DNA of 64,000 nt from Lepidodermella squamata (GCA_047495785.1 JBLDXI010000032.1:4278001-4342000), one strand, 5' to 3'. Shown: positions 16,932 to 42,625, counted from the first letter of the stretch. The notes: generated by a model not told the origin, from the letters alone. Program-made: numbers and translations.

Positions 16932-17468
16932 ATGCCGGGCGAAATCGTTCTTGTGCTGGCTATGCTTGTCGCGTGCTCATCTGCATTGACGTGCACAACT
17001 GGATACAACTACAACAATTTTGTTGATGCCTATTTTCGCAACAGGTACTCCGCCAATTCTGTTTCCCAATCAAGCAACTGTTTCTCATGCTCGGTAAATA
17101 CAATTCGTAGCATTGATTTCGTTGTATGATTACAATTTCACTTGTCTGCAAATTTGAATTGACAGACGACGGTCGTGTCAACGCAGTCGCACGGTAGCTA
17201 CATCTCCTACGGTTGTGAAACAACGCCATCGACCACTGGCAACTGCCAGTCGACGAGTTATTCGGCGTCTGACAGCGCAATGTATAATGGACAAGATACA
17301 GTCACGACGACAGTGTGCTTGTGTTGCCAGGACAATTGCAACAGCGGCAGCACCTGTGGAGGAAGTGCCGGAGGGCGAAACAACTCAGCCTCATCTTTGA
17401 GCAGGGGAGCAGCAGTCCCCCTGACCGGTCTTTTGCTGCTCCTTGCTGTTAAACTCATTTCGCTTTGA
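16932..17468 (+). CDS. Atypical LU/three-finger GPI-type protein, array gene L1 (1 domain)
   Basis: Exons 16932-17093, 17166-17468; signal peptide, LTC..YNNFVD..CFSC, YISYGC, CLCCQDNCNSGSTC, hydrophobic C-tail. Confidence 0.85.
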
Positions 17469-18554
17469 AGAGTATCTAAACAACTTTTCCTTCAATAAAA
17501 TGAGTTTTTTCCTTGATGTTCATTTTCTAATATATATAGTAATATTCTTCCATTTAACGATTGCCTCAATAAACAATAAGCCGAAATAAGCTTGTCTGTG
17601 GCGGCTCACCTGGTTCAATTGCATCAATTCTATACAAATAAGTAGTTTACCTACAACAACTTGCTGTATTTTAGCAAAAGATTGCGCCGCGAGTCGTCAG
17701 TACATTTGAAGGTGTTTTTGCTTTTCACATGATGGCAGAAGTAAAGGAAAAAAGTTGCTCACGTGCTTCGAGTTGACTTGGAAAATGCTAAGAGGACAGT
17801 GCACAGAAAACGCAGCATTAATTTCACATCTGGCAGTTGCCCTTTATGCACCCGTACATTTACGTTTTGAGCAATAGCCTCGAAACCTTTTTATAACCAA
17901 CGAGTTGTCAACGAGTAGTTAGTTGCTGGAAATGCGTCGTAAAATTTAGTAATGCTATATTTTAAGAAACGGTAATACGCACAGAACGGTTTGGACTAAT
18001 ACTCTATGGACTCGGCATTACCTATACATTTCTGCAGGACATGGAAAAAATCAATGAAAACACATAAAAATGAGTTTTTTGCACATTAAAAGCATCATTT
18101 TTCGGCATCTGGCAATTATAAAGCGTAAATCAGGCAAATTTTCGCGCAGCCACAACGTATGTAGCTCAGCTAGCATGACAGCTTTGTACTTGATCTTTAC
18201 AGCAGATACCGATAGAGCTAATCAATAACTTTACAATATTGTCCTTTTCTAAACATACAAATTGCAGGAACCAAAATTAGAAAGATATCTTGACCCTGAG
18301 GTAGCATGCTTATCGGCGCCCCTGGAACGATGCCCTAATTTTTAACGATGCAATCGTCACATGGATGACAACTCTTCTATTAAGATTTCTCGATAACTTT
18401 AACAACTTGCGATCACGATTTTTTGCGTCTCTAGCAGCGTTTAAATGGGGAGATGCTAGCAGTGCCGATTCTATAGAGTATCATCAGTTCCAAGACAAAA
18501 GGGGATCCCCAGCATCTATCTGTTTTTGTAAAATTTAATTCATCCGGCGCAACG

Positions 18555-19081
18555 ATGCTGAACAAAATCGTGTTTGGGTTAGCAATGCTTGTGGTTTGCT
18601 CACATGCATTGACCTGCAAATCTGGCAACATTTACAACAATTATCTCGACCCGCAAACAGGCAACATGCTCACCTCCAATTCGACTACGCAATCAAGCAA
18701 CTGCTTCTCTTGCAACGTAATAAAACAATTTTGAGTTTTTGCAGCCAAAAATGTGCGCATTGACAGGTCATGAACGTGGCAATTGGGTCCAACGGAAGCT
18801 ACGTGTCGTACGGCTGTAACACAACGTCGTCCGCTGGAGGTTGCTCAGTTGGATTTTCTTCTTCTTCTTTCAAAGTCGATGGCAACACACAACAATCCCA
18901 AAAAGGGTGCACGTGTTGTAAGGACAATTGCAACAGTGCCGACGACTGCACAGGAGCCCCGGCTGTTGGAACCACGGATGCTGGTGGGCGAAGCAGTAAC
19001 TCATCTCCATCTCTCTTTATGGATTTTGCATTATGGGCCGGTCTATCACTGCTATTTGCTGCGAACCTGATTGCGTCTTGA
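18555..19081 (+). CDS. Atypical LU protein L2 (1 domain)
   Basis: Exons 18555-18716, 18767-19081; MLNKIVFGLAMLVVCSHALTC..CFSCN / GSYVSYGC..CTCCKDNCNSADDC, GPI-type tail. Confidence 0.85.
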
Positions 19082-19414
19082 ATACCTAAATAACCCTTGT
19101 AATTCGATGGACTGATATATTTTCTTTTGTGTCTACATTACGTTTGACGTAGTGTTTCTCCATCAAGCGAATGCTTGGCAAAAATAACCAAGCTGTAAAA
19201 AAGCTGAACACATTTTTTTAAATAAATGCATCAGTGATTCACTAAGATTGAATCAATTCTACATGAGCAATAGTTTACTAACAACAGCTGAATATATTTT
19301 GGCTCCGCTGAAGAGGGCGTAGTTGGATACGGCCGAGTATCCAGGGGCAGCTATTCATACCTGCTTTCTCGCCAGCTATCCCTGCGCGCACATTCACCAT
19401 ATTTTTCGCTGCAA

Positions 19415-19916
19415 ATGAAAATGATGACGACATTTAGCTTGACGTTGGTTCTTTTTTCTACGCTTATGCCGAAGATGATAGCAGGTCTTAGCTGTTACAC
19501 TGGCGGTGATTACAACAGCTTCATAGACTCGCAAGGAAACAAACTTAGTGCTAGCATGCCTTACGTCCAGCAGAACAGCTGCTCCGCTTGCACGGTATGG
19601 CTATTTAATTTTATTCGGCTATATAGCAATTACAATTTTTGCTCAGACAAGTGTGGTGAGCACGAATTCGCATGGCGGTTACGTTGTTTACGGCTGCGAA
19701 ACGACAAGCGGGTCGAACTGTTCGCCAAATTCGTACTCCGCTTCCAGTTCGAGCGAGTATCAAGGCAAAGACACCGCCACGACAACTGTCACAATGTGCT
19801 GCACGGATTTGTGTAACTCTCGCAGTAACAACCGCAACTCTGGAATTAGCGCTCATGCCAACTCAGGCTACATGCTGCTGTTTACAGCCATCGCAGTTTT
19901 AGGTTGCCATTATTAG
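19415..19916 (+). CDS. Atypical LU protein L3 (1 domain)
   Basis: Exons 19415-19594, 19647-19916; LSCYTGGDYNSFID..CSAC / GYVVYGC..CCTDLCN. Confidence 0.85.
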
Positions 19917-20748
19917 GTAGGCTGCCAGTCGAATCGGAGCTTGAAATTCTGCGATGATCTTGTGTGTCGACTGATCTTTCAAAATAAACGATAATCCCGC
20001 AGTAAATGCATCATTTCGGGATTTTTTTTCTGAATGAGCGACTTGGGCCTTTTTAGGCTTAGTTTCAGAATACAGGTGGCAGCAGGTGATATCGTGAAGC
20101 ACAAGAAATATTTCCTCGAAAAGTTTCGGATATATTTAGCATAATTAATGAAGGGCACACCTCTTACTAATCAGAATGGTTGGTTCCCCTTTGTGACCGT
20201 TTGTCGCGCCTACACTTCTTTCGATTCCAGTCATTTGAACTGTGCGACGAGGACGCTGATAAAATTGTTGTCTTCTCAAAAAGCTTTTGAACGTAGGGAA
20301 GAAGAAGGTATTCGGCAAGCTTTTTCGATTTGCCGTCACACTAATCAGTGGTCAAACAGCGATGAATAGCCGAACAAAATTCCCTGGATTTTTTGCTGTC
20401 CCACTGTTTTTAATTTCCGACGTAAGCAGAGAATTCATCGCTTTTTTTCTTTTAACATTTCTAGAACCAAAGCATATTTATTGCCACTGCATTTTTGAAG
20501 AGGTAATATAATGAATTAGAAGAACGTACACAGGCACCTGCTCCCTCCTGTGCTATTCACGAGCAAGCATGATTTCTTTCTGCTATTTTACGCCGAATAA
20601 AATGGCGCCTATTAACCAAGTCTTTTCGCTGCGCAGCAAGAAAATCAAAAGGCGTCAATATATTCGCCCGTCGCAGAGTAAACACCCTTTATATGCTATA
20701 TTTTTCGGTTCGAATATAATTCTTAATAGGAAGACCTCAAGACACAAC

Positions 20749-21250
20749 ATGTCGCTCTATTACCTGCTGATCATCGCGTCTCTAGTTAGCACTACCTTGT
20801 CCCTTGATTGCTACAGTGGTGGCTTTTATTCGAATTTCGTCGATTCGAATGGAGGCAAGTTGAGCACGAGAATTGAGCTAACGTCATCTAGCAACTGTAA
20901 TGCTTGCATGGTAAAAAAAATTTCGAACAATTCGCTGCGTTTCTGAACGAGTTTTTCGCTAAAAAACACAGGTTACCACGATTTCTACGAATAAGAACGG
21001 AGGCTATGCTATGTACACATGTTCGAAAGATGTCGCCAGCTGTTCGGCCGGGACAACGTCCAACAGCCAGCCGTACACTGGTGGCGACACGGCTACCACG
21101 ACCATGTGCATTTGCTGCACGAACAACTGTAACAACAAAGATTACGCCTGTGGCAACTCGGTCACCTACGCTAAGGGAGGCGCCGAACGAGTGGCGTCAG
21201 GATTTCTAGCCACCGGACTTCTCTTGATCACTGCGACCCTTTTCAACTAG
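20749..21250 (+). CDS. Atypical LU protein L4 (1 domain)
   Basis: Exons 20749-20910, 20972-21250; LDCYSGGFYSNFVD..CNAC / ..CICCTNNCNNKDYAC. Confidence 0.85.
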
Positions 21251-21444: not shown

Positions 21445-21915
21445 ATGAAGCACGTATTATTTGTATCATTTTTTCTATTCGCGCCAATAATCCTAACGAC
21501 AGCTCTCAGATGTTACAGCGGAACAAATTACAGGAATTTTATTGGAACAAATGGGTCGGTCTACGTTGTGCCATCGACAATTCAGGAAGCTCAAAACTGT
21601 TCGGCTTGCAGGGTAGAAATGAAAGCAAAATTTACCCTTTATCTTAATTTTATGCTATTTAAGATGACTGTGGTCAACAGCAGAGATAATGGTGGCTACT
21701 CTGTTTACGCCTGTGAATCTCGGGCAGTAATTTGTTCAGAGACAAAAATGACCTCGAGTGGAACCTACCGAGCCACAGACTCCTTAACTACATCGCGATG
21801 CGAATGTTGCTATGATCTGTGTAATTCAGACAACTTTGGCTGCAGCTCTGCTGGTTTCGCCGTGGCTTCGAAATTCATTCTCATCGTTTCAGCTCTATCA
21901 TTGCTGATGCTATAG
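21445..21915 (+). CDS. Atypical LU protein L5 (1 domain)
   Basis: Exons 21445-21612, 21664-21915 (51-nt stop-free intron); LRCYSGTNYRNF..CSAC / ..CECCYDLCNSDNFGC. Confidence 0.85.
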   Translation: MKHVLFVSFFLFAPIILTTALRCYSGTNYRNFIGTNGSVYVVPSTIQEAQNCSACRVEMKAKFTLYLNFMLFKMTVVNSRDNGGYSVYACESRAVICSETKMTSSGTYRATDSLTTSRCECCYDLCNSDNFGCSSAGFAVASKFILIVSALSLLML

Positions 21916-22134: not shown

Positions 22135-23749
22135 ATGATGATGTGGGAAATTATAAAACTAATGCTTTCCTTTACCTTGTTGCAATCTTCTTGGCAGACG
22201 GAGCAGATCGATAAAACTGTCGGATGTTACAGTGGGGATTACGCGTATTTCGTAGGAATGGATTTCTCGAACGTCACTCGCTTTGACATGTGCACATATT
22301 GCATGGTAAATTTTCCACTGCGAATTTGGCTTGATTTAATTTTAAATGCTCTTCAAGGCTCAGCTAGTGACTTCTCGTTCCAGTAGCGTCCAAAACGTCA
22401 TTTCGTTTTACTGTATTACGTCTGACATTCCAGAGTGTTCACCCGAGCTCAGTCAGCGGTTCGAAATCCGCAACAGTGTTCAATTCGAAATTTCAATCAA
22501 GACGTGTTGCACCTCCCTCTGCAATACCGTGAGCGGCATTGTATCGAATTTGAAGAGCGACCCTGATGAGCTCACCTGCTACTCTGGGGGTTCTTTCTTC
22601 AATTACACGGATCCTCAAGGAAAATCCATGGATATGGACGTTCCAGTCGTTGAACAAACAGGCTGCGTTCAATGCCTCGTCAGTTTTTGCATCATCAGGC
22701 CATCTATCTAATCTCAATTTTGATTTACACCAGGTTTCAAAGGGTGTTACAAGGAATCACGGCCAGTTCATAAGTTACGGGTGTGTTTCAAACGAAGCAA
22801 GGGAATGCTCTGCAGCTACTAGTCTCCACCACACGCCTTATCTAGATTCTAAAAACTTGGAGATCGATACCCTCACCACCAGCAGCGCAACTTGCTGCAC
22901 ATCCTTGTGTAATGGGGATATCGAGAGGCTGGCTTTGATGCCAACCGAGCTCTACAGCCTCGATTTCAACACAGAGGCCTCAAGTTGTTACGAAGGCTGC
23001 ATAGCTGACGAATTTAGTGAGCAGTCTCATAATTGCTCGAAGCCTAAAATTGTCGATGGTTGTAGCCGGTGTGGAATGACATCTGTCTTTTCACTATGGG
23101 GCAACACCTATCGCAACTACTCGTGCATCAAGTCGAATGACGAGGAGTTTTGTTCACCAGCTATTAGTATCACGACAGCGATTGACAACTTCACTTCTTT
23201 CTCAGATATTAAAACAGAAATAGCTCAAGCTTGCTGTTCACCGCTCTGTAATTCGCCCCCTGATGACGAGCAGTCAATAGGAAAGAGCACTTTTGAATGC
23301 TATGTTGGCACCGTTCATGAACATTTCATAGTCGAAAATGGTACTACTAAAGATGGCATCAATCAGCTGAGAGTAGCCCAAGATTGCAGGCAGTGTGTAG
23401 TGAGTATACCCTTTATTTTAAAATGCTGTCACCATTTGAATTTTTTCAGAAAATGGTTTCAATGTCGCAAAATCACGGCGGTGGCACGGCGTATGCATGC
23501 ATCAAAGATTTGCAGGCTCAACCATGTTTAGCTGTAGATACATCCGTGGACAATCTGATCGACTATGTAGACACCACAATTTGCACTTGCTGCTCATCTC
23601 GATGCAACTCTGAAAGCTTCGTTTGTGTTTCAGAAGCTTTCCCGAGACGAGTGCTACCGAAAAATCACGCCCGCCCAGCTGATGGTGCCGATTGGATAGT
23701 TATTTCGGTTATAATTATTTTATTTTTCGAGATTGATTATGATCCATAA
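22135..23749 (+). CDS. Atypical LU protein L6 (4 tandem domains)
   Basis: Exons 22135-22305, 22358-22678, 22734-23399, 23450-23749; four CC-x3-CN motifs; C-terminal hydrophobic segment. Confidence 0.8.
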
Positions 23750-24015: not shown

Positions 24016-25950
24016 ATGTTTTCGACTCAGGTATTGCTGCTCGTCAGCCTGATGTTAGCAGCCGACTTCATGAAACCAGCTAGAAGTCAAGATGAAGGTA
24101 CAACAGAGGCAGTATCAACAACTCCAGAGGGCCCATTTCTGCCTGTCGATGATTTAACCACAACACCTGAGACAATCTCATTCGATGGATCTGGAAATTT
24201 TGGATCTGACGGATGTGGAGAGAATTGCTTAGAATGCACAGGCTATTCATCGTCGGGTGAAATCGCTGTTAGTCAGGGCTGCTCAGCTTGTCAGGTAAGC
24301 AATGAAGCTTCCCTGATAATTTCTTCGAGCTAGATTTCTCTTGCTTTCAAAGCTGACCCAGACATACCATGCATCTAACGGGAGCCGAAATGCTGTCAAT
24401 TCGTTTGACTGCATTACAGAGGTTGCAAATACGTGCGAAGCGTCCATAACGACAAGCCAAAGTGCGTTCCGGGATGAGGAAGGGCGATTACTAAACGAAA
24501 TAATAACCAACATAAAATGCTGCTCGAGCTTCTGTAATATGGATTCGTTCGTGGAAGAGCTGCCTGAAACAGGTGATGGCATTGCCTGCTTTGACGGCCT
24601 GGTTTCTAACGTGTTTTACGACCGATATATTCGACCTTTGAACATTACTCAAGCTCCATCGATCAAAACAAACTGTAGCAGCTGTCTGGTATTTTTAAAT
24701 AGAAAAAACTTTGATTAAATATCTAAATCTCACACTAGGTTTCCCAAGGCCTAACGTCTAACCTCGGTTCTTATTTGACATACAAATGTATGCTCGCTAC
24801 TGATACGGAGACTTCTTGCATTCCATCAAGCTATTCGACAACGGATCCCTATGTCACATACATGGGGTATGATGAGATAACTACGGTTACGTCAGTTTGC
24901 TGCTCGTCTTACTGCAACCTGGATCCAAGCCTTCTCCTAGCTGTGCCCGATCAATCGAGCAACAGCCCGAAAATCAATTGCTTCATGGGTGGAAACTACA
25001 ATGAATTCATCGAAATTAACAGCGGCGGATTTTTCAACCAAACAGGGATGCCCACTGTGGTCGGGGGATGTGATGCCTGTTATACGTCCAACTTTAAATC
25101 TGCATCGTACGGCAGTTTCATCCTCTACGGCTGCGAATCTAACGGAGGTATAACTTGTTTGGGTGGGCAAAACGAACTAAGCATTCTGAAGTATGGCGAC
25201 GAATTTGCTACCATCACTAATACACCCTGCTGCTCTTCCCTGTGCAATATTCCGGCAGGTAACACTTCGATGTCATCACCTAGCGACAGCATAACATTTT
25301 GGGATGGTAATGACAATGGTAGCTTGGCAATGAACAGCAGCACGGCGCCAATCTCCTGTTTCAACGGAACTAGGATTCAGAGTCTTACGCAAGTCGATGG
25401 CTGCTCTTTATGCTCAGTTAATATTTTTATATTAAAGTAATGACATCGTTTATTGTTTTTCCCCCAGGTAACGGTTAGCGATAGCTCTGATGATGGTTCG
25501 GGGATCTCATATGGTTGCTTAACCGGCCCCTTAACCCTGACTGCTGTAATTATGCTCTCTGTCGATCAGATGTGCCTGTGCCAAACCAATCTATGCAATT
25601 CGTTGGAAATGGAATGCAGCTTTAACTTTACTTTCACTGACACTGTCTCCGATGCATCCAATATATCAATGCTTGAGAGTGGCCAACTAGTCAACGTAAC
25701 ACGGCCAGTCCCAATGGGCTTGAGCAGCAGCAGCGGCATACAAAACAGCGTTGTCCTCAATTCTACGACACCGGCTGCGAAGATAGCTGATAAAACAACA
25801 GCAGTCAATGGGAACGGCAACTCTCAAAATAATGCTGCTCCCAGTGCCAGTGTTACCCAGCAGTTGAAGAGCTGCTCTACAGCCGTGAAATACCAGTTAC
25901 TCGCTCTTTTCCTCCCTGGAGCTCTTTTCCTATCGATTTTTGGGATATGA
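24016..25950 (+). CDS. Atypical LU protein L7 (4 tandem domains plus Ser/Thr/Asn stalk)
   Basis: Exons 24016-24294, 24353-24688, 24739-25416, 25468-25950; CCSSFCN, CCSSYCN, CCSSLCN, CLCQTNLCN; GPI-type tail. Confidence 0.8.
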
Positions 25951-26628: not shown

Positions 26629-28079
26629 ATGCGACTGCTAGTGGCCTATTTTGCAATCCGCAGTGTCTTAGTGGCGGTAACCCACGGCCAGGACGATCTT
26701 GCAGCAGAGGGTATTCTGAGCGACGCCTCCGGTTCAGGAGCAATCACATCTAGCGGCCTGGACTGCTATGTCCTTGAATACAACGCTCTATACCCCATGC
26801 CGAGTGATGCGCCTGTTCAGAGTGGCTGCACAGCATGCCAGGTTGGCCTATTCACAATTATTTGTTTGATTGTTTTTTACCTATTGCGGTGCAAAACAGC
26901 GAAGTTTAATCGTTCAAGCCACCAGTGGGGATCCCCAAATGACCAATTCTTTGACATGCGTGACTGATACCTCGTCAGCGTGTGTGGCTTCGACGCATAC
27001 AGAACAATCGTTATACACAAACGATGCAGGCTTATTGGCGAGTGAAATCCTTGCAGACGTGACATGTTGTTACAGCAATTGCAACGCCTTGCCCGAGTTG
27101 ATCCCACCGACTGTCGGCGGGATACAGTGCGCAGATGGGCTGGTTTCGAGCAGTTTCTTCGACCAATATGGCCAGGGCTTGAACGTTGTTCAACCCCCGC
27201 AAATCATCGCAGGTTGCGGTAGTTGCCTGGTATTTGAACATTTCACATCAAACGACCCTTAAATTTCGATATTTTCCTCAGGTATCGCAAGGATCCACGA
27301 TTGCAAACGGCTCGTATATAACATTCGAATGTCTGCCATCAGACAGCGATGCGGCATGTAGTTCGTCTGCGTATTCAACGGTGGATGTTTTAACCACAAT
27401 AAATGGGGCGATGAATGTTACGACAGTCACGTCGATCTGCTGCTCCGACAACTGCAACCTCGATCCGACCCTACTCGCCGTTCCTGTTCAGTCGAACGCA
27501 TCTAGCCCGAAAATCAATTGCTTCAATGGCACTATCTACGGCGGTTACGTCGACTTGGATACTAACCAAACGATGAACGATGTGACGCAGCCGACAGTGG
27601 TTGGTGGCTGCGATGTTTGCCACACGTCTTATTTCAAAACAACTGACAGCGGCACCTACATTTCGTATTCATGCGGAAATACCGAGGGCGTGACTTGCTC
27701 GGCAATATCTCAAGATGCCAGCATTCTGCACTATGGCGACGGCTTTGCAACTGTCACCGATTCACCATGCTGCACGTCCCTGTGCAACGTTCCGACGAGT
27801 TCGGACATGAATTTCATGTCGCCGAATGATGATTGGCTTGCTGCGGAATCTGAACCGGTCATCTACCAGCCTGCTACTGCTAATGCTACTAACAATGCTA
27901 CGACTGCTGTGAGATATAACATAACGACTGCAAAACCCATCGCTCCTACTGGCGGCGGAGGAGGGACTGGTAATACGCAGCTGCAGCAGAGAAGTTCGGC
28001 TTGGGTTGAAAGTTTGAATGTTTCAGCTCTAATTACCTGCACGGTATTAGCCCTACTTGGCATTCAACAGCTTGATTAG
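26629..28079 (+). CDS. Atypical LU protein L8 (3 tandem domains), paralog of L7
   Basis: Exons 26629-26841, 26900-27229, 27282-28079; shares CNLDP.LLAVP.QS..SPKINCF and PTVVGGCD with L7. Confidence 0.8.
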
Positions 28080-29420: not shown

Positions 29421-30029
29421 GCTCAAGATTATATTGTCAGCAGTTGGGATGCGCGCGCTCCTTCGAACGAGACCAGGCGGCTCGTCTTCCAATAGGACCT
29501 TTTCAAGGTCATATATATTCCCAAAGTAGCTGACAAATCTCGAAGATCAAAATTAGTCGATTATGTCGGGCGAAAAAATTATACCAGGATAGGCTGAGCT
29601 ATCGAACGAACGAATATCTTTTTTATTGTCCTTATTCGACATGTACAATTAATAAATTCAAAGCCAAAGGAAAACCAACAGAAAGTACTTGACAAACAAG
29701 GCACCGGCACAACGGGGCTTGTCTTATACAGTGCACGGACGACACTATTGGGGCGGCAAATAGGCGAAAGTATCGGCAGCGTAAGGATTATCGGTTACGG
29801 GGATTCGTTAATGTGAAGAGGTATGCTAGTGCTAGAAGAGGTGGGAAGACAGAAATCAACTTATTGGCGGATTAGGAGACCACGGAAGATGAATTATAAG
29901 CGTTCATACCTGACGACCAGTTCGCACAACGTACTCATTAATTATGTGAAGAAAAATGCTGATGATCTGCGAAAATACACTACATCTGTGGCGAGGCGCC
30001 TTGCCAATTTCTAATTTCTAAATGTTGAA

Positions 30030-32180
30030 AAACAAAATGCAACAATAAAAACAGTAAGAGTTACGAAAAGACGACGCTGCTGAAAGAGGCGATCAAGGTA
30101 GCTGGCAGCTGGCACGACGCCAGGCGCCAGGCGCCAGGGCGCTGAACGATGATGTAGTACCAAGACAGATTTTGCCCGCAGCGGCTCGGGGTGCGGTCCA
30201 TGTGGGGCTTCCACGAGAGCTTCGCGTCAAAGTGAATTCCTGAGACGCGCAACACTGCGACCTAAGGTATAGCGGAGCCGTTTAGCGTCAAATGCAAGGC
30301 TGGTGGTTGCCGCCTGAAAGCGAGTGCTTCACTTTTGGAGGCGTTGAACTGCTGGCGCCAGAGCTGAGCCTGCACCCGCGACTCGGCATCCCAAAATGAC
30401 ACACCGGTACCGAGGACGGTCAAATCGTCAGCGTAGGCGTCAAGAACGCTGGCAGGAGCGCCAGTGGGGCCCAAGAGATCCGCGGTGAATAAGATGTAGA
30501 GCAGAGGCGACAGCGGCGAGCCCTGCGGCACTCCACAATTTACCACAACGGAGCGACTAAGGAAACCGGCCACCCGGGCCTGCAGTTTGCGGTCGCGCAG
30601 AACATCTGTGAGCCAGCTGATGAGGTTCCTCGGCATTGGAAGTCCGCAGAGGCGGTGTACGAGGCCGGCGTGCCGGACTGAGTCATAAGCAGCCTTCGCA
30701 TGAAGACCCGCAACGACCAACTTGAGCTTGTCAGCACGGCACTGTTACGCCCGATGAGCGATCTGGACTGGAATGTCGACAGCGGAGTGGTGCTCGCGGA
30801 ACGCATATTGATTGTCAAGCAGAAGGTGTCTATCCTCTAAGAAACGACTCATCCAGCGTGCAACGATTGCCTCCAAAATCTTACCATAAGAAGGCAGTAT
30901 CGAGATCGGGCTTTGACAGCTAGCGGCGTCGGACGGCTTACCAGGCTTGGGAACAGTGACAACAACCGCCTGCTTCCAATCGGGCAGAGCGAATTGGCTA
31001 CCGAGACGCATATGGAGACGCCGAAGATGAGCCTGCAACGGAACGCCACCCCACTTGTAACAGACATTACCCACGCCATCGATCCCTGGAGCCTTGAACG
31101 GTTGCAGACGGTCGATCTCTAGAGCAAGCATGCGTTGGCTGGCACTGAAGTCCAGGAATCGGTGGCCATCAGGGTCTCAAGCTCGAGCCAACGCTGGCGC
31201 AGGGCGTCGTCCGCGGTAACTCCCCCGCTGAGAAACTGTAAAGCGGCGTCATTGACCACCCAAACATCCAGGGTCGAGAGAGAACCAGTGCGGAGATCGA
31301 TGTGACTTGAGGATGGTGAGACCTAGCCGGGTACCATGTGATGTAGGTGATAACCGTGCGGATTCCATACTCATACTCTTTATTTGTGCAAGTTGCCTTT
31401 CGACATTTAGCATTTGATATCAGACATCACCACAAGGCTTATGAGTCAACTATACCCATGGTTGATGGTCGAACCATGGTCCCCAGGCTTTGTGTACTGA
31501 GTAGCCATATCTTGATTGCCGGTGAATGGCGTCCTACACCGGGAGGGAGGAAACCGCGGTCTCGGGTGGATTTGCTTGGCGGTGTTACCAGCAGGTACGC
31601 ACTCGAGGATTGTGCCCTTGGCTCCGTAGTCGGCGACACGTCTTCCTGTCAGCTTGATTAACGGTCCCAGAAACGCCGCATTCAATGCGTAGAAGAATGA
31701 TTGGTGTTGCGGTTCTGGGAATTGAACCCGTGCCTCTTCGCCCCCAGTGAGGTGCTTGGACCGCTCGACCACTTGCTCCCCTACCTGACGGAAAAAGACA
31801 GAGGAGAGGGGGAAGAAATAGGTTTCAGAGAGGAAAATAAAGAGCGCATCACCATCAGCCAAGTAACCAGCTTCAACAGCACCTTGGGGATTCCACTGCA
31901 TCATTACTACGAGATCAGTTGTCGTTTTTGTAGCGATAGCGGTCACGGTCGGCACTCATTGACTGGTTATTGCCGCTAGAGCGCAGGTCGTAGACGTCAT
32001 CCGCCAGATCAGCCAAGAACGACTCCAATTTCTCACGCCATCCATCCTGTTTGGCGCGATCGGCGTCACATGAGGCGGCGGGCCTCGGCCGTGGGGAACA
32101 CTGTCTGCCGCGGCGATCTTCTCACTCTTGGCAGCAGCACGAGCGTGGCGTGACGCGACTTCGGCCGACTGCGCAGCTTA
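30030..32180 (-). mobile_element. Degenerate non-LTR retrotransposon (LINE; APE endonuclease plus RT), inactive
   Basis: RT motifs KAPGIDG, WKQAVV..PKPGK, PISIL..GKILE, QYAFR, KAAYDSV, GVPQGSPLSPLLY, YADD, FNASKS, GIHFDAKLSW; endonuclease-like QWN..G and LSET at 31446-31955; in-frame stop near 30745 and frameshifts; GC-rich vs flanks; boundaries approximate. Confidence 0.9.
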
Positions 32181-32369
32181 AAAAGCGGGGCACCCCTTTG
32201 CCTTTGAGGACCAAAAACATATTATTAACAATTCATGGATTTTTCAATTTTAATATTTTCGGGATGACATTTTCAGCAGATTTCCGACCTCTTCAGCATT
32301 GTCAAATTCATGAGAAAAACGAAGTGAGGCAAATTTATCTATCGATAGGTAAAAAAATTGCGCGAGGTC

Positions 32370-32600
32370 AGGATGGAGCGCGACGATAGTCACCGTGCGC
32401 AAAACGGCTGCGGACACCAGGACAAACACAACGGTCATTCCGTCATTCTTGCGGATATACCGATGGTGTGACTTGCTCGACAATTTCTAAAGACGCCAGC
32501 ATTCTGAACTATGGCGGCAGCTTTGCACTGTCACCGATTCGCCGTGCTGCACGTCCCTGTGCAAGGCGCCGGACATGAATTTCGACTCGCCGAATGACGA
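32370..32600 (+). pseudogene. Deleted/frameshifted fragment of L8 last exon
   Basis: gtgacttgctcgacaatttctaaagacgccagcattctgaactatggc...tgctgcacgtccctgtgcaa matches ~27690-27790, then jumps to the L8 3' flank (acgaataaat, ~28175). Confidence 0.8.
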
Positions 32601-34130
32601 ATAAATGTGTTATCTGGTATAATGTATACATGGTGGGTGAATGATTGAGGGTTTTTTATTTCAGATGGCATCAACCATTGATAAACGCCACATCATCGAT
32701 GATGAGTCATAGGCTAAAGGCTAAAACAAGGCGGCTTCAGCCAGGAAGAGATATACCTAATGTTTGGAAACCCATTTGTCATAGCGCTTAAAGCAGCAGT
32801 GCGTATATAATGCGATCGGTTACAAGATCTTATTTGACTCGGCATATGGCGCAATGCTATACATATGCTGGCTGAGAAAAAAAACGAAACACTAAGAAAA
32901 AAAACCAGGTGAAAAAATACGGGCAAATAACCCGATGGAACCGACGCAAATTGAATGTGTAAGCAATGATGAATCGCGCATGGTATGAGTAGTATATGGT
33001 ATTATCAAAGGGCAGTCGCTACCACCATATTATCGCAGCAAGCTCAAAAGAATCTTACCTACAGAGAAGCGGTGCATTTCAACTCTCTGCCCCCTGAGGC
33101 GTAGAATGTACAACCTGTTCAGCCTGTCATTTTTTTCTCCAGTAAATAAAATGTAAAACGGATTATGAAACCGAACTGAAATGGACTTTTACACTTGCGG
33201 ACTAGACACTTGTGAAATATACCTTTCCCTCCTATTATCATTACTCCAGCTTCCTTACTGGATTTACTCTCGTTAAATAGAATAAATTAAAAGTAATAAT
33301 CGTTATACTACCGTTTTTTACTAGAATAATCTGATCTTAAGTTTTTAACATCTTCTTGCGAAAAGCAATGAGCGGAAAATTTCTTATCCCAGTAGCATGT
33401 GTTGCGATAATCAGTGTCGCAGCAGCCCTCGAATGTTTCAACGGCGCCAAGTACGTCAATTTCGTGGATTCAACCGGCAATCAAATGTCGGCTTCAACGG
33501 CCATGAATACCGAGAAAAATTGCGTTCAATGTGGCGTACGTCTTCATATCTCGCGCTGTATACTTATTATTTAAATGTTCGATCACACTAGATATCAAAA
33601 TTTGTTACTGAAAAGAGCGGTTGGTATTTAGTCTCTCAATGTATTAAGCCCGACGGTCCCAGCGGTTGTGCTGCTACTTCGTCGTCGATGACCACCGATT
33701 ACAACACAACCAAGTACATTGACAAAGCATCCGCCACTTCGTGCATCTGTTGCACTGACAAATGTAACACCGAAGATGCTGCTTGCCTTAGCGGCAAGGT
33801 GGGCAGTGGCAGCAAAAGCGGGGCTGCTGCCTTCAGCGGCTTCAACTTGTTCTGGATAACTGTTGTCAGCAGCTTTGCAGCTGTCTTTGCACAGTAAAGC
33901 ATCTTAGATATGATTCGCCAAAAAATCTTGATCTTCAATTAACGTTTTACTTCGAATTGCTTGAAAAATGGGTTCGGGCTGCTTTATATATTCCGAGTGA
34001 AATTATATTATTTTATTAAAGAACATGTATTTTAAGGTGGATTCTTTGAGGACAAAAGAATTTACAAATTTTGGGATATTTCTCATTTTTCTCATCAGAA
34101 CGAAATCATCCATTTTGTGCGAGAAAAGCC
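32420..34130 (+). repeat. Local duplication, copy B (with ~280 bp extra sequence at ~33013-33290)
   Basis: Colinear with 27640-29420 apart from one internal deletion and one insertion. Confidence 0.85.
33368..33897 (+). CDS. Atypical LU protein L10 (1 domain), recent duplicate of L9
   Basis: Exons 33368-33535, 33592-33897; intact frame, CICCTDKCNTEDAAC. Confidence 0.85.
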
Positions 34131-34342
34131 AATAGTCAGGCGAAGCGTGGCATGTTTCCACCGGATAATTTGTCAATAAGAGCACTAAGCGGGTGCTTTG
34201 ATTTTAATTAAGCATGCGAAAGCAGCTTGTGTGAATCGAAAAATGCGCGCTTGTTATTCGGTGCACAACAAGGTGGCCTATGTACTTGCATTCGTGCCAA
34301 TAGCCACTTGTTCTTGCACTTCAAAAAGAAGTGGAGTAAATT

Positions 34343-35774
34343 ATGAAAGCTGATAGTCTGCGGAACGTTCTCTACATCGGCCTGATAGCTGAACAAATCG
34401 GGAAATCAGCATCTATCGAATGCTACAGCGGCGCTGCGTACCACAACTTCGTGGACTCGACATCAGGACAAATACTAAATTCCTATACTCCGAAGCTACC
34501 TGAGCAAGATTGCATCCAATGCTCGGTAATAAAGTCATCACATGTTCTGAATTAGTTTACATATTATTGATCACTGCAAATCACTTAGGTGAGTCACTTT
34601 TTATCCAGTCAGAGCGGAAACTACTCTGTCTACTCGTGTATTAAAACTGGGCCGGAAAAATGTTCGGCAACTCATTACTCGATGAGTAATGATTACAAGA
34701 CTCCACTAGCTATGGACAAAGCTTTTATTTCGAGTTGCAGTTGTTGTTCAGACTTGTGCAACTCGGAATCTTTAGTCTGCGACTCGGTTGATATCGCAAA
34801 CATGGCAAACATTTCGGTTGCTGATCCGTCCAAATCGTTGGTTTGCTACGTTGGAGCGATTTACCGCAACTTCACAGACCCATATGGGACGAAATTGAAC
34901 TCCGTAACAACGCCCATATTACAAGGTGGATGCTCGCAATGTGGCGTGAGTTTGAAATTTCACTTTTTTCTAGTTTTGATTTCCCTATATTTTCAAGTTT
35001 GCTAACGTGATGACGAGTCGTAACGGCTACTACACAACTTACAGCTGTATAAAGGATACTACCAGCTGTGCGAATTCGCGTTATGCCTCGACCGGTCAAT
35101 ACAATACGACAACAGACGCAGATGAACAAATCGTCACCACTTCGATTTGCTGCTCATCCGGGTGCAACTACAACGCTGAAGAACAAGGCTTACAGGGAGG
35201 GAAAGTTGCAGATGATACCCAATCACACAATCTTGAATGCTACAGCGGGGCGTCCTACCACGATTTCATGGACCAAAACGGAAATCTGATCAATGTTACA
35301 TTTCCGGAGACAACAATCGGAGGCTGTATTCAATGCAATGTAAATCAGTCGAATCCTCGATTTTTTTCAGCTAAATTTTGTTATTTAAAGGCAGTGAAAG
35401 TTACTACAGCAAAAAGCGGGAGCTATCGTATGTATTCCTGTGTTAAGGAGGGCGCCTTCTCATGTCAAGCCACTGATTACTCGACAACTCAAGACTACAA
35501 GACTCCGGCAGGCATCGATCACATGACAGCAACTAACTGCATTTGCTGCTCGTCGAAATGCAATTTCGGTGGCGGGAAATGCGGATTTTCGGAACTTGGC
35601 TCTCAGCCAACTACAACAGGTGGATATTATTCGCCAGCCATGTTGACAACTCTGACGATTTCCGGCTCATCCAACATGAACTCGCCACCTCGAAACAACG
35701 CCGTCGTTCGAACCCACCTCAACTTTGTTCTTGCGATCAATTTCCTCTTTTGTGTTTATCGAATCGTGTTGTGA
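34343..35774 (+). CDS. Atypical LU protein L11 (3 tandem domains)
   Basis: Exons 34343-34525, 34589-34945, 34998-35339, 35391-35774; CSCCSDLCN, CCSSGCN, CICCSSKCN. Confidence 0.8.
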
Positions 35775-36513: not shown

Positions 36514-37021
36514 ATGCTTTGGTATCCCTTGGAATGTCTATTTTTGCTTAGCTTCACCATCGCTTCTGATGCAATAGATTGCTACTCCGGGACATACTAC
36601 CGAAATTACGTCGACACGACCGGCAATAAATGGAATACATCAACGGCTCTGATTACACTGAACAATTGCGCCCAATGCAAGGTGATTAATTTTAAGCTCT
36701 CATCGAAATACTTTGCGACAAGGCCCTTTTCAGATAATAAATGTTCTGACGACGAAAAATGGCGGCTATTCGAGCTACGGCTGCGATAAAAACGTCGTGT
36801 GCAGAGCTGGCGAAGATACTATAAACGCCAACTACGGCACCACGGGAGATACAGCAGCTACAACAACGTGCAACTGCTGCACGTCTTTGTGCAACAGTGC
36901 CGATCGGAAATGTGGCAGCACCGGGGAAACTGACAAGAGTCATGGCAACCGAGCCGTGCAACCAATAGCGAGCTTCATCGTGGCTATGCTGTTTTTGAAT
37001 CGCTATGTTTCATTGTTGTAA
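36514..37021 (+). CDS. Atypical LU protein L12 (1 domain)
   Basis: Exons 36514-36681, 36734-37021; IDCYSGTYYRNYVD..CAQC / ..CNCCTSLCNSADRKC. Confidence 0.85.
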
Positions 37022-37278: not shown

Positions 37279-37912
37279 ATGAGCTTCGAATTAATAGCTG
37301 TCACGTTGCTACACATATCTGCTGTCACACTTGGCCTTGACTGCTACATTGGCGGGTCGTACAACAATTTCGTCGATTCGGCCGGCAATAAAATGAGCAT
37401 GTCGATGCCGATTGGCAACCAATCTAACTGCTATGGCTGTGCGGTTGGTTACAATTTCTCCCATTTACACCCATTTTTCTCCTAATATTTCTGGGTTAAA
37501 GGTTTCGAAGTTTTCTTCGTTGAAATCAGGAAGTTACACTGCGATGGTGTGTGTTACAAGCAGCGATTCTAACTGCACAGCTATGGCTGTAACTCAGTCC
37601 CAAGATTACAATGCAACTTTGTGGATGGATAAGGCCCAGATTGCGAATTGTGCGTGTTGCACATCCATGTGTAACACTGAAGCGTCATGCAGTTTGCCTT
37701 CCACGGACTCGAGTAGTGCTACTAACTCTACCTCAGGGTCAACGTCTGCAGTAACTACCAAGGCTGTAACGACTGCGGCACCGCCCAAAGCATTGGCAGC
37801 CGAGACGACAACGGCGAAAAGTGGCACAACATTAACCCCAACGAAATCGGGCGTGATTTCATTGGCCAGTTTTTATTGCTTCTGGCTGGCAACGTTTTAT
37901 TACCTGTTGTAG
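37279..37912 (+). CDS. Atypical LU protein L13 (1 domain plus Ser/Thr stalk)
   Basis: Exons 37279-37443, 37502-37912; LDCYIGGSYNNFVD..CYGC / ..CACCTSMCNTEASC. Confidence 0.85.
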
Positions 37913-38489
37913 AGCTCTTCATCAGAAAAAAGACGAAAACAATTATTTATGAATCAATAGCCTGTGCCAAATTTTTTTCAAAAACTAATTTTTCGTATTA
38001 ATTTAGTGAATTAATTTCGTCTGTTTCGGTGAACATGCTAGGTGTCAAGTAAAACGTCTTTGCCTTCAATCAAGCCAACACTGTGTTATACGTGTTTTTT
38101 TTACCTAAATTTAAACTCTTAACCCCACGACGTCAGAATTTTCGTTTTGGAAGATGTGCAGTGCACGTCGGTAATAACGAGCCATACTTCTGGCTTCTCC
38201 CATGGTATTCACCCTTGCTATAGCTAAACTTTGCTTATAACGAACTTTGGTCGAACTTCCGAAAAGATTGGAGTCACAATTTTCAAAAATTTCAAATTGA
38301 AATTCCCTGACTGATTTCAGTTTCCCATCGCAGCTGTTAGCTTTCTATCTGTATAAGGTATTATGGTGATTGCTTGGTCATGTCGTTATATTTTTTGGCT
38401 AGAACGAAATGTCGCTATATTTCAGTTATAACAACACGGCCGAAAGTCAAGGATTTTTTCGTAGTTAATTTATTGTTTCGCCAACTATA

Positions 38490-39677
38490 CCGTAACGCGT
38501 CCTAACTTTGGACAAAACACCTTTTTTAATTTTAAAAAATTCGGTTTTCGTCTAAAAAAATGGAAAAAAATAGCCAAACCTCCGCCCAAGGAATCTGCGT
38601 GGACAGGTGAAGTTTGGAAAATTTAGAAGCTCACCTTGATTTTAAAAAAATAGGTAAAGAAACCTCTAAATTTGGACACTCGTTCCCAAATTTGGACACC
38701 TCATTTGCATATGCTAATTCGACCTTACACACATTTTATTCATTGTTGCGCAATTTTTCTCCTGTTTTTAAAGGCGACTTTTGTAGCCACTTGACACTAA
38801 AATATTGCTACCGATAGGATTCACTCATCGTCAGATTTAATGCAGATGTACGCAATACCAATTATACACCAGGCTTTTAATACCGTTAATGAACGATGAA
38901 TCTTCTCAAAACTATGATAAACCAGGTGAAAATGTCTCTGAAGCACCGAGTCTCACTTAGAAAGTAGACGGAGGGACTCATTCAAACCTCAACCCATGGT
39001 TTAACCTCAAACTCAGTTTCTTTATCGCCGAACTATTGATATTATTTACCGAAATTGAACTGTCATTAGTCCCATGGTACCTGCTGTTCACCTGTTTAAT
39101 TAAAGATTGGGCGCCTTCGGATTTGTATTCGGATTCATTATTATTCTCTATGCTCTCTAGCCAAAATCATGAAAGCACAGCCTAGGCCGGGAGTCATTAA
39201 GCTAATTCCAAGGTTTCATAAATGCGTTGCCATTCTTTTCAAAAACTGACAAAAAGCATACATTTCGTTTGCATATGCGTAGAGATAAAAATATCATTAA
39301 AAGTGTCCAAATTTAGAGGCTAAATTCAAAGTCACCTGTATCAAAATTGGCTTGTCCTTCTGCCGATATTTTTTTACAGAATTTAGTTTAGGTAAATCCC
39401 TATGCGCAAACAAAATTTCAGCCCTAACCGTTCACAGGTGAGCATTTGGCAAGGGGGGTCCCAAAACTCCTTTCTGAGTGATCGAGCTTCGGCGATTTTT
39501 CGCAAATCGATATGAATTATGAAAGTATTAGCAAATTTGGTACCGTTGGAAAGCCCATGAAGGGAGCTATTTTTCAGTGAAAGTTTTTAATTTTTATCAG
39601 TTATGTACAAATTGATATTTGGGTCTAAAGCTCAAAGTGTCCAAATTTGGGGTGTCCAAATTTAGGGCGCGTTACGG
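38490..39677. mobile_element. Non-autonomous DNA transposon (MITE-like, Tc1/mariner-pogo type)
   Basis: TIRs CCGTAACGCGTCCTAACTTTGGACA / TGTCCAAATTTAGGGCGCGTTACGG (23/25 match), TA on both sides (38488-38489, 39678-39679), internal AAATTTGGACAC copies in both orientations, no transposase ORF. Confidence 0.85.
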
Positions 39678-40136
39678 TATAGCGACATGGCCAAGAAAGC
39701 ATATTATGGTAGTGCCCACTAGTTTTCATCGTTTATAATGTCCTATTCGCTCGAAACTGGTAGGGGCGATGTTTGCTTACAAGTATATGAAGATCCAATT
39801 TATCATGCTTTAGTGCATTTGTCATCGCATTGCAGTATGTATCACTTGTTTTTTGTTGCACTCAAAAATCCATTTGCACATGCAGGTTTCGTTTTTTCGA
39901 CTTCCTAATTCGCAACAACTTCACGTCGTTATGAAGGTAAAAAATGCAGATACCAATTTTGACAGCTGAAAAGCAGTCATGCTAAAAGCAGGTAGCTGGT
40001 ATCCGATGAATTTGACACGCATATAGCGAACTATGGCTACCGCTGATCGATAAACAACCTATTACTTGTTGCATTAATGCGAACAAAGCCACGCCTCGTG
40101 CATGAGAAGCCTGCTCTTCACTCATTCTGCTCGAAA

Positions 40137-41107
40137 ATGAACTCTGCCACAGTTCTGATTTTGGTAGCTTTGGCTGAATTTGGGCGTGCTCTCGACTGCT
40201 ACGAAGGCTACACTTATTTTAATTTTAAAGATCTTAATGGCAACGCTGTTCCGGATTGGAATGTCTCCACAACGAAATCAGGATGTGTCCAATGCATGGT
40301 AATAACATTCGAAAATGTTTACAAAAATTTGATGGACTCTTGGTAATGTTAGTACATTAATACAACAACGCTGAAATCGGGAGGTTACGTTTCGTTTGGT
40401 TGTATCGGTTCAGATTCAGCAACAACATGCTCCCCGGGCAGTGGTATTTCTACGACGCCTTACGGCTCAAGCGACACGGCCACTCTTGCATCATGCACGT
40501 GTTGCTCCGCCAAGTGCAACACCAACTGCGTGGCAGCAACTGGAACAGGTAGTTCGGGTTCCTCAGGTACTTCGACAGGTGGACTGCAATGCAATGTCGC
40601 ATATAATTACGCTAATTTTGTCGATGCAAATGGCAACAAACTGACCTCATCAATTGCCTCCACAACACAGTCCAATTGCAGCGCCTGTACCGTATGACCT
40701 ATGATCAGCGCATTTGATCATTTTTCAACATAAAATTGTTTCAGGTCAGCAAATTCGATTCCGTCAAGTCAGGTAGTTACGTAGCTCTAACTTGCACATC
40801 CGGTTCTGGCTCACAAAGCTGCCAGTCTATGCAAATGACCATGACTCAGGACTACATCACTACACTTGGAACGGATAAAACCACGACAGCCAGCTGTTCG
40901 TGTTGCTCGTCCCTTTGCAACACGGAATCGTCATGTTACGGCACTACTAGCAGTACTAGTACTAGCACGAGTACCCTAAAAGTTCTCTCATCCACGGCTG
41001 GAGCTACTAACGCGAAGTCAACTAAAAATTCTGCTGGCTCGCATGGTTCCATCATGAGACAAGTCTATTTTATGGCTGCCTTCACAATCATGCTACTGCT
41101 TGCCTAA
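40137..41107 (+). CDS. Atypical LU protein L14 (2 tandem domains)
   Basis: Exons 40137-40298, 40353-40691, 40745-41107; CTCCSAKCNTNC, CSCCSSLCNTESSC. Confidence 0.85.
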
Positions 41108-41680
41108 ATTCAACTGTTTATACCTTCTAAATCTAAGTAGTATTTTCACCTTTAGAGATACATTTTGTGATGATGAAATGGATGCTCAAATCACATATCC
41201 AACATGATGAGCGTCGCTTTTTCCCGGTTAATCTTTTGACTTATTCACCACTGAAACAAGCACCTAAACGTTTTCATGAGAGCGCTTAGCTCACATCTCG
41301 CTAAAAATTAAAATTGCAATGGATTTCTGCAACAAGATAACACAAGATTCCGCGAACACTGATGAAATAAAGCCAATTCATTGTCGTGAAAACATTTTCC
41401 GACCAATCGAAATTCCAACCAACAAAGGTCTACATGAGATGACATAACAAAACTGTGAGTAAGCATGCGCGGCTACTTGGTCAACTAGCTTTCTGAAGCC
41501 TCGGAAATTTTCATTTCCGTGGGTGCAAACTCGCTTTTGTTTGAGGGGGCAGACTGATGGCATTCAATAACTCAGGGGCTGCGCAATAAAAGAGCGATCA
41601 ATGCAACATATTTGTTTCAAAGGCAAACATAGGTGATCTTCGGATGCGAAAGCAAGTTTCCACGCATTCTGTCGAAAAAT

Positions 41681-42625
41681 ATGAAATCTGTCGCCTTGCT
41701 ACTTTTGCTAGGATTAACAGACCTAGCTTTTGCCATTGACTGCCTCGAGGGCTATGCATATTTCAACTTCAAAGATGAAAATAGTACCGCTATTCCGAAT
41801 TCGAATATTTCGTATACCAGAAGTGGATGTGTTCAATGCATGGTATGTCTTAACAATCAGAACAATTTAATTGTGATAGTCTATTTTATAGTACACGAAC
41901 ATGACAACGCTGAAATCTGGAAGTTTCGTAAATTTTGGCTGCATGAATGACTCGGCGACATCATGTTCGCTGGCAAAAAGCGTATCATCGTCGACTTATG
42001 CATCAACTGATGCAGCCATCGTTGCAACTTGCACTTGCTGCTCCGATAATTGCAACGCCAATTGCGTTATACCCAATGGATTCACCTTTTCATCTGCCGT
42101 CTCTTCGTCCTCATTGCAATGCAATGTCGCCGGCAACTACGTCAACTACGTGGCCACAAATGGTGAACAATTGACTCATTCTATGCCGCCAACCATACAA
42201 CCCAACTGCACAGCTTGCGGCGTGAGTTAGCATTCAACAATATTGAACATTTTCTACCTAAATTCAATCTTTGATAGTTCGGCACTTTCGATTCTGCGAA
42301 ATCTGGCAGTTTTCAAGTGCAAACTTGTGTCACCGACCCATCACCGCAGGGCTGTCAGCCTGTGCAACTGACCATGACTCAGGACTACAACACGACGCTC
42401 GGCACGGATAAAGCAACATCGGCTAACTGCGTGTGTTGCTCGTCTCTTTGCAACGCGGATTCATCATGCTCCGGCTCTGTGAACACCGTCGCACCGGCAG
42501 CCTCAGGCGGCGGAATGGAATCACAGCAAACAACTTCTAAACCTAAAAACTCAGCAAGCTCCAGGTTCCCGATTTCTTTTTCAGCTGATTTGGTGGCTAT
42601 TTTCAGCATTTTTCTGTTATTTTGA
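41681..42625 (+). CDS. Atypical LU protein L15 (2 tandem domains), paralog of L14
   Basis: Exons 41681-41842, 41892-42221, 42278-42625; DC.EGY.YFNFKD shared with L14. Confidence 0.85.

Follow-up and report, generated by a model that had tools for sequence, protein, structure and literature searches.

What do the 15 similar genes that follow one another on a single strand of the Lepidodermella squamata genome encode, and are their products members of a known family? The genes occupy positions 16932-42625 of the stretch of DNA analysed here (GCA_047495785.1, JBLDXI010000032.1:4278001-4342000), which has 64,000 nucleotides and is referred to below as the window; positions are counted from its first letter. 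Three-finger or LU domains are very versatile small binding modules of animals, found in toxins, complement control, channel modulation, fertilisation and junctions. The reading that we consider likely is that the array is a tandem, lineage-specific subfamily of these domains, encoding secreted, probably glycosylphosphatidylinositol (GPI)-anchored and glycosylated surface proteins with one to four domains each. What is new is the lineage-specific subfamily; the three-finger fold is already known.

An array of 15 genes and 27 domains

The DNA of the window is eukaryotic, and its introns are very short. The array runs from the ATG of gene 1 at 16932 to the end of the stop codon of gene 15 at 42625, lies entirely on the + strand, and contains 15 intact genes with 27 domains, distributed over genes 1-15 as 1, 1, 1, 1, 1, 4, 4, 3, 1, 1, 3, 1, 1, 2 and 2. 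These are exactly the coordinates and counts of the original prediction, which was made from the sequence alone. A regular-expression scan for CC-x3-CN finds 26 exact matches on the + strand (17322-42454) versus one on the - strand; in 200 nucleotide shuffles of the region the motif occurs 0.02 times on average and at most once. Each of the 26 motifs has its upstream half, L-x-C...C-x-x-C, in the correct order within 480 nucleotides. The 27th domain, the fourth of gene 7 (g7d), ends in C-L-C-QTNL-CN, and it aligns to the family profile with hhalign at E 5.4e-6. The pairwise identity between domains is mostly 20-45%, in line with the high divergence that had been claimed.

The domains are predicted to have a three-finger fold

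Structures were predicted by AlphaFold for two intronless domains, using alignments of 5 rows; the full domains available for this were the three that are naturally intronless and two in which the intron is by chance in frame. The model for the third domain of gene 8 (g8c) is all-β, with a predicted local distance difference test score (pLDDT) of 78 and a predicted template modelling score (pTM) of 0.68. The best 50 matches of this model in a Foldseek search of the PDB are all three-finger proteins, the best having E 2e-3, and VIA-align gives Z scores of 9.5 to uPAR D1, 8.8 to GPIHBP1 and 8.2-8.5 to CD177, C4.4A and TEX101. Its shape matches in the ESM Atlas all belong to UPAR_LY6, QVR or PLA2_inh clusters (TM score 0.54-0.64). 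The third domain of gene 6 (g6c) is 24-28% identical to the other rows of the alignment and gives a model with pLDDT 71. In a comparison of this model with 48,161 chains that did not use Foldseek, the top 31 are all three-finger proteins, including TEX101 at Z 8.1. Neighbours found by a protein language model, which serve only as a lead, are the TGF-beta receptor II ectodomain, Activin_recp, UPAR_LY6 and Toxin_TOLIP. Because two independent models each retrieve only three-finger structures at the top, the predicted three-finger fold is well supported, and the earlier assignment to this fold, for which AlphaFold and Foldseek had been proposed as a check, is upheld.

The cysteine framework and loop I

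Numbering the cysteines within the array, the spacing is C1-x28-C2-x2-C3-x17-C4-x5-9-C5-x20-28-(C6-x)-C7C8-x3-C9-N-x2-5-(C10). Among the 26 CC-x3-CN domains, the gap between C1 and C2 is 20-29 residues (median 28), that between C3 and C4 is 17 in 22 domains, that between C4 and C5 is 5-9, and that from C5 to CC is 20-28. The last of these is loop III, which is 34% Ser/Thr and thus as long and as Ser/Thr-rich as had been described. All 26 of these domains have the same eight cysteines and the Asn, while CxxC and the final C-N are present in all 27. The eight cysteines and the Asn would correspond to LU cysteines 1, 4, 5, 6, 7, 8, 9 and 10-N, with the loop I disulfide missing, and the LU core order of 1, 4-10 and terminal Asn (PMC6600238) is found in 26 of 26 domains.

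The motif of the long loop I is C-Y-x-G-x-x-Y-x-N-F-x-D-x-x-x-G, with each position kept in 15-22 of the 26 domains. Following the invariant C1 (26), the counts are Y 15 (plus F in 4), G 22, Y 19, N 16, F 19 (plus Y in 5), D 18 (plus E in 3) and G 18; in the second half of the domain they are G 22, Y 18 and Y 16, with C4, C5, CC and CN all at 26. The loop I disulfide is absent from 24 of the 27 domains. The original prediction of a long loop I, with a YxNFVDxxG motif in place of its disulfide, therefore agrees with what is found. Loop I has double the usual length. The conserved motif most likely forms a self-supporting β-hairpin that would replace the lost disulfide.

C6 and C10 are both present in 15 domains and both absent in 11, and never occur singly (Fisher p 1.3e-7). 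This all-or-none occurrence argues for an extra disulfide; as a pair, the optional C6 and C10 would add a fifth disulfide, not present in the ancestral pattern, by which the C-terminal tail is bound back to the core. There are thus 15 domains with ten cysteines by virtue of C6 and C10, and two more (g6c and the first domain of gene 7, g7a) that reach ten by additional cysteines in loop I, with eight cysteines in a further nine domains and in g7d. The last of these has lost both C5 and C8 and kept C6, C7, C9 and C10, which hints at an alternative wiring, C5-C8 and C7-C9. The canonical reading would instead give C5-C7 and C8-C9, with C6-C10 in both cases; under the alternative, the last ring would retain the canonical x4 size. 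Because C-x-C-C-x3-C-N aligns without a gap to the C-x-C-x4-C-N of g7d and of the Quiver-like genes described below, the 'x3' may be an extra cysteine added to the canonical frame rather than a deletion.

Signal segments, tails and stalks

All 15 genes encode a hydrophobic, signal-like N-terminal segment with small residues at its end, right before L/I-x-C, and in all 15 the C-terminal tail is hydrophobic, with triplets of small residues 5-16 positions before it. The signal peptide and GPI-type tail originally proposed are thus predicted for every gene by a rule-based check, with a weak signal segment in gene 11 and a borderline GPI tail in gene 6. The reading frames end right after the hydrophobic tail, and no kinase or cytoplasmic exon of the kind expected for a TGF-beta/activin receptor is found. 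The layout is that of GPI-anchored LU proteins, and the proteins are probably GPI-anchored. Genes 13 and 14 encode mucin-like stalks, and we infer that the array proteins are heavily glycosylated.

In genes 7 (24016-24207) and 8 (26629-26757) the signal peptide is followed, ahead of the first domain, by an acidic and Ser/Thr-rich stretch that is probably disordered and recalls the acidic N-terminal region of GPIHBP1.

Gene structure and transcripts

Of the 27 domains, 24 (g7d and 23 of those with CC-x3-CN) have a GT..AG intron in phase 0, 49-72 nucleotides long and placed one codon past CxxC; the other three, which come third in genes 6, 7 and 8, are intronless. The signal peptide and the first half-domain form a single exon, and there is no intron between domains. 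In the archetypal LU gene, there is a separate signal exon, each domain is encoded by two exons split at the tip of loop 2, and the flanking introns are in phase 1 (PMC6600238). The array departs from this arrangement: its domains also have two exons each, but the phase-0 intron lies one codon after the equivalent of LU Cys5, at the base of loop II.

Transcript evidence comes from the contigs of one RNA-like run (X1, 2015), examined over genes 12-15, with a DNA run (X2) as control. Contigs of X1 exactly skip the four introns listed as confirmed in Table 1, one each in genes 12 and 15 and both of those in gene 14, and none of these joints is present in X2. For gene 12 the joint is 36679/36732 (cut +2, GT..AG), in X1 only. 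For gene 13, a loose contig end at 37446 runs on into the start of the predicted second exon, which fits the predicted intron. One 756-nucleotide contig crosses both domains of gene 14 with 0 mismatches, and a single contig crosses both domains of gene 15, with its joint at 42221/42278. Because the X1 contigs skip the predicted introns and span both domains, genes 12-15 are expressed, being transcribed and spliced as predicted.

Relatives of the array

The genome (121.2 Mb in 151 contigs) was scanned with profiles made from each half of the domain. The second-exon profile finds the 26 domains, a copy on C1 and a gene that lies 0.85 kb ahead of the window, and it matches a cluster on C38 weakly, while the first-exon profile finds the array and the C1 copy only. 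The outlying genes have the same intron position and the same C-x-CC-x3-CN-x4/5-C end, and are without the loop I motif. Judged by these profiles, the array is the core of a somewhat wider clade. The cluster at C38:133000-143000 has at least four or five genes, the gene just before the window is at C32:4277148-4277309 (C32 being the contig of the window), and the dispersed copy at C1:3888418-3888785 is a close one and resembles genes 9 and 10; at all three places the intron comes at C-x-x-C-x followed by GT. The CC-x3-CN motif was considered as unique to the array, and this was rejected since it is also present at these three places. The spacing on which the original prediction was based is thus confirmed in 26 of the 27 domains, but is neither restricted to the array nor wholly atypical, there being both other loci and precedents: in schistosome Ly6 proteins, 3-5 residues precede the last Cys (PMC4492491).

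A neighbouring array of 12 canonical Ly6 genes, 11 kb downstream, was considered as part of the same subfamily and rejected, the two genes read having CC-x4-CN and the family profile giving nothing there. Alignment with hhalign to canonical Quiver-like and UPAR_LY6-like sets from this genome covers the last 10-14 columns only, at E 0.06-0.16.

Outside the genome, no relative was found among 1.84 billion proteins, in libraries that do not contain this genome's own proteins, so that the result is weak as evidence of absence. Word-indexed protein searches also returned none, and genes 12-15 have no match there either, despite their transcript contigs, so that the collection does not contain the proteins of that run. 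A metagenome scan with one array protein gave no relative. Two matches were rejected: a nanobody (E 0.023, second-exon profile against the PDB), which is due to low-complexity Ser/Thr, and the one match of an exhaustive HMMER search with the 5-row profile, a bacterial protein with repeated CPxH...CPKC metal-binding units, which is spurious.

Comparison with known three-finger families

The LU superfamily (Pfam clan CL0117) includes uPAR, C4.4A, TEX101, CD177 and GPIHBP1, and the modelled array domains resemble these in fold (Z 8-9.5). They also have in common the eight core cysteines ending in C-N, a signal peptide with L-x-C at the predicted mature N-terminus, a GPI-type tail, one to four domains per protein, Ser/Thr stalks in some proteins as in C4.4A, and an arrangement in tandem clusters (PMC6600238). 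Unlike LU members, the array domains have no N-terminal C-x-x-C and no loop I disulfide, their loop I has 28 residues and carries a motif, they have CC-x3-CN and the C6-C10 pair, and they are invisible to the Pfam models of the clan. The intron is in phase 0 at the base of loop II and not at its tip, and there are no phase-1 interdomain introns. In the evolution of LU proteins the loop I (2-3) disulfide has repeatedly been lost, and extra disulfides have repeatedly been gained (PMC6600238). The strict Ly6 definition requires C1-X-X-C2, together with at least 10 cysteines within 60-110 residues and C10-N (Hijazi 2009, as given in PMC4492491); C1-X-X-C2 is found in none of the 27 domains, with C-x3-C in g6c and g7a.

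Flatworms are reported as close relatives of gastrotrichs (PMC6468455). In the platyhelminth CD59-like and Ly6 proteins (SmLy6A-K, SmCD59.1-7 and Sm29), the two cysteines ahead of loop II are separated by exactly two residues, and in SmCD59.2 these are Cys24 and Cys27, followed by Cys45, that is, 17 residues to the next Cys (PMC3812095). The array resembles them in CxxC (27 of 27) and x17 (22 of 26), the comparison being of patterns with the published description and not of sequences. The flatworm proteins are GPI-anchored surface proteins, one of them with two domains, and g7a keeps a flatworm-like start, C-x3-C-x2-C-x14-CxxC. They differ from the array in having an N-terminal C-x2-C-x2-C cluster and a short loop I, without YxNF(V)D or C6-C10.

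This genome also has about 20 intronless Quiver-like (PF17064) genes, on C6, C66, C60 and C30, many of them in one cluster on C6 (314000-396000). Their pattern is C-Y-x-G...N-C-x-x-C-x-K...C-Y-C-N-T-D-L-C-N, and they share with the array the C-Y-x-G start, an aromatic residue in loop I, N-C-x-x-C, a loop II of 16-17 residues and a colinear C-terminal frame. Unlike the array genes, they have a loop I of 13 residues and C-x-C-x4-CN, are intronless, and score above the Pfam threshold. At the level of these patterns, several of the traits called atypical are common to the flatworm and Quiver-like relatives. This is so for the CxxC at Cys2/3, which is universal in the array, as originally read, and has precedents in both groups.

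Snake short-chain α-neurotoxins have the same 8-Cys core without the loop I (2-3) disulfide (PMC6600238) and are matched at Z 6.3-7.5. Unlike the array proteins, they are secreted, have a single domain of 60-65 residues with CC-x4-CN, and show no sequence similarity. It is worth adding that the paper on the L. squamata assembly (PMC11660948) does not mention Ly6 or three-finger genes, and that a 2026 survey of invertebrate LU proteins, which used 14 Pfam profiles, does not mention gastrotrichs (PMC13719153).

Duplication and selection

Domain trees and pairwise comparison indicate duplication of whole genes: the domains of gene 8 correspond one by one to domains of gene 7, and those of gene 15 to those of gene 14. 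The first domains of genes 6, 7 and 8 have a short loop I, and this, together with their common loss of the intron in the third domain, points to one multi-domain ancestor for the three genes. Synonymous divergence (dS) is saturated for most pairs, and genes 9 and 10 are the only recent pair (dS 0.2-0.3). They lie in duplicated units of 1.3-1.5 kb (28174-29426 and 32597-34132) that are 85-89% identical by blastn and are separated by a retroelement remnant (Table 1), with G+C content rising to 0.55 at 30-32 kb. The array would thus have grown by old tandem duplication of whole genes, those with several domains included, with one recent event.

The ratio of nonsynonymous to synonymous divergence (dN/dS) is 0.12-0.60 in every measurable pair of paralogues and so gives no sign of gene-wide diversifying selection; the array appears to evolve under purifying to relaxed selection. 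These values, and the age of most of the duplications, with dS saturated, speak against the 'diversified recognition repertoire' that had been expected from the divergence of the genes.

Features of the array and its neighbourhood

The coordinates of the genes and of the domains with individual features are collected in Table 1.

Table 1. Genes, selected domains and the retroelement remnant of the array. Splice sites are predicted (GT..AG, phase 0) except for the introns given as confirmed by transcript contigs.
Feature	Position	Strand	Domains	Introns	Remarks
Gene 1	16932-17468	+	One LU	17094-17165	Exons 16932-17093 and 17166-17468
Gene 2	18555-19081	+	One LU	18717-18766	
Gene 3	19415-19916	+	One LU	19595-19646	Without the optional C6/C10 pair
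Gene 4	20749-21250	+	One LU	20911-20971	
Gene 5	21445-21915	+	One LU	21613-21663	Intron by chance in frame and stop-free
Gene 6	22135-23749	+	Four LU (a-d)	22306-22357, 22679-22733, 23400-23449	
Gene 6 domain c (g6c)	22980-23270	+		Intronless	Two additional Cys in loop I
Gene 7	24016-25950	+	Four LU	24295-24352, 24689-24738, 25417-25467	
Gene 7 domain a (g7a)		+			Begins C-x3-C-x2-C
Gene 7 domain c	24973-25266	+		Intronless	
Gene 7 domain d (g7d)	25357-25626	+			Short loop I (x14); C-x-C-x4-CN; without C5 and C8
Gene 8	26629-28079	+	Three LU	26842-26899, 27230-27281	
Gene 8 domain c (g8c)	27513-27806	+		Intronless	
Gene 9	28641-29164	+	One LU	28809-28864	Recent duplicate of gene 10
Retroelement remnant	29500-32500	-			Reverse-transcriptase reading frames; RVT_1 E 6.4e-12 for 30262-30720
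Gene 10	33368-33897	+	One LU	33536-33591	
Gene 11	34343-35774	+	Three LU	34526-34588, 34946-34997, 35340-35390 (last in frame)	Signal segment weak
Gene 12	36514-37021	+	One LU	36682-36733 (confirmed)	
Gene 13	37279-37912	+	One LU	37444-37501	Long Ser/Thr-rich stalk
Gene 14	40137-41107	+	Two LU	40299-40352, 40692-40744 (both confirmed)	
Gene 15	41681-42625	+	Two LU	41843-41891 (predicted), 42222-42277 (confirmed)	

Between genes 13 and 14 there is a high-copy repeat (38430-39830), in which the summed contig depth of the DNA run is in the thousands, versus about 70-110 in the flanks. It has many internal rearrangement joints, and is present in the transcript-like run too. Directly downstream of the array, at 42702-44816 on the - strand, lies an intronless open reading frame (ORF) of 704 residues, with a weak match to ANF_receptor (E 2.6e-4) and a multi-pass hydrophobic second half, which looks like a divergent class C G-protein-coupled receptor (GPCR). 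It is followed on the + strand by two short ORFs for Cys-loop channel subunits (45952-46962 and 47550-48743), each with Neur_chan_LBD and Neur_chan_memb. Upstream of the array there is an ORF for an APH-type phosphotransferase (12361-13221, + strand, E 1e-18), and a RING-variant ORF is found at 6780-7472 on the - strand.

Nature and function of the array proteins

Several results weigh against the assignment to the LU superfamily or against GPI anchoring. Pfam hmmscan at E<=10 gives no match for 9 ORFs, 26 second-exon halves and 5 full domains, and scans of the genome with UPAR_LY6 (PF00021), QVR (PF17064) and Activin_recp (PF01064) find nothing in C32:4294932-4320625; elsewhere in the genome the same scans find 32, 39 and 5 places, respectively. 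A profile search of the PDB gives no significant relative, with AMHR2 at E=3 only. The array aligns by hhalign with the 20 Quiver-like genes colinearly but weakly (E 0.011 over 55 columns, 0.0013 for the N-terminal part, and 0.011). The fold models were built from 5-row alignments and have pLDDT 71-78, and Z scores of 8-9.5 are just above the stated background of the tool. As to anchoring, it was judged by simple rules, and gene 6 has 6 residues, 3 of them charged, past its hydrophobic segment, which could be transmembrane. The Pfam result has a second side, in that a comparison with UPAR_LY6, QVR, Toxin_TOLIP and Activin_recp had been proposed as a check, and a match to a described family with the same spacing, or a fold other than three-finger, as a refutation. 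No described Pfam family captures the domains, and neither of the two refuting outcomes has been observed. If the lack of a significant sequence link to any LU family were taken at face value, the resemblance could be convergent, the domains being an unrelated small disulfide-rich β fold. This we regard as very improbable, because the models for two domains only 24-28% identical to each other retrieve only three-finger proteins, including in the search without Foldseek, because the eight cysteines are ordered as in the LU consensus and are followed by its C-N end, and because the hhalign alignments to the Quiver-like genes are colinear. Little more credit is given to the idea that, instead of being GPI-anchored, the products are type-I receptors, or else toxins or defence peptides that are secreted in soluble form. 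The snake toxins do have the same 8-Cys core without the loop I disulfide (PMC6600238), and gene 6 has 6 residues past its hydrophobic segment; however, all 15 ORFs close with a hydrophobic tail that is followed by few residues or none, there is no kinase or cytoplasmic exon and the next gene is mostly 194-1,086 base pairs away, and a build of several domains plus Ser/Thr stalks is usual among anchored LU proteins.

For proteins of the kind that we favour, namely anchored LU surface proteins, the function can be suggested only by analogy. They are most likely, on weak inference, binding modules for surface or extracellular proteins, acting through the loops and the concave sheet. A role as surface-coat or adhesion glycoproteins, like the flatworm tegumental Ly6 proteins or C4.4A, is a tentative possibility; a role as cis-acting modulators of channels or receptors, like Lynx1 or Quiver, is more doubtful, and the remaining weight falls on something else. 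The modulators can be given specific partners, in that they might act, in the manner of Lynx1 or Quiver/Sleepless, on the products of the adjoining Cys-loop, class C GPCR-like and T-type calcium channel genes. The GPCR-like ORF directly after the array and the Cys-loop subunit genes next to it (45952-48743) agree with this, as do the Quiver-like group being the nearest pattern in the genome (CYxG, CxxC and the C-terminal frame) and the fact that membrane-tethered LU proteins are established channel modulators (PMC6600238). Yet adjacency may be due to chance, the hhalign link to Quiver is weak, and neither Lynx1 nor Quiver resembles proteins with mucin-like stalks and as many as four domains, so that we hold this version to be rather unlikely. 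Its extension, in which the array and the canonical Ly6 array downstream would form the accessory side of a co-located channel and modulator system, with the long loop I as the channel-binding finger, is improbable. The same low standing is given to a repertoire for recognition or immunity that diversifies rapidly under positive selection. Such a repertoire would show numerous paralogues on one strand, with 20-45% identity and variable loop tips, as the array does, but dN/dS over whole genes stays under 1 in every pair that can be measured and most duplicates are old, and the strong conservation of the loop I motif and of all spacings argues for a shared constraint.

Implications

A subfamily of 27 domains has been missed by the models of the Pfam clan, and yet is predicted to have the three-finger fold. 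Surveys of invertebrate genomes depend on these models, and because the subfamily, of which at least four genes are expressed, is invisible to them, counts of LU proteins that rely on profiles underestimate the family. The array can be seen as a natural experiment in the plasticity of the scaffold, in which a hairpin carrying a motif would stand in for the loop I disulfide, and a C-terminal disulfide would be gained or lost as a unit, with the sister domain g7d forming a bridge to the C-x-C-x4-CN type. If the co-located channel and modulator system were true, lineage-specific three-finger proteins would tune the adjoining expanded Cys-loop receptors and T-type calcium channels. Finally, the CxxC and x17 spacings held in common with flatworm Ly6 proteins may, if confirmed, provide a molecular character for the relationship between gastrotrichs and flatworms.

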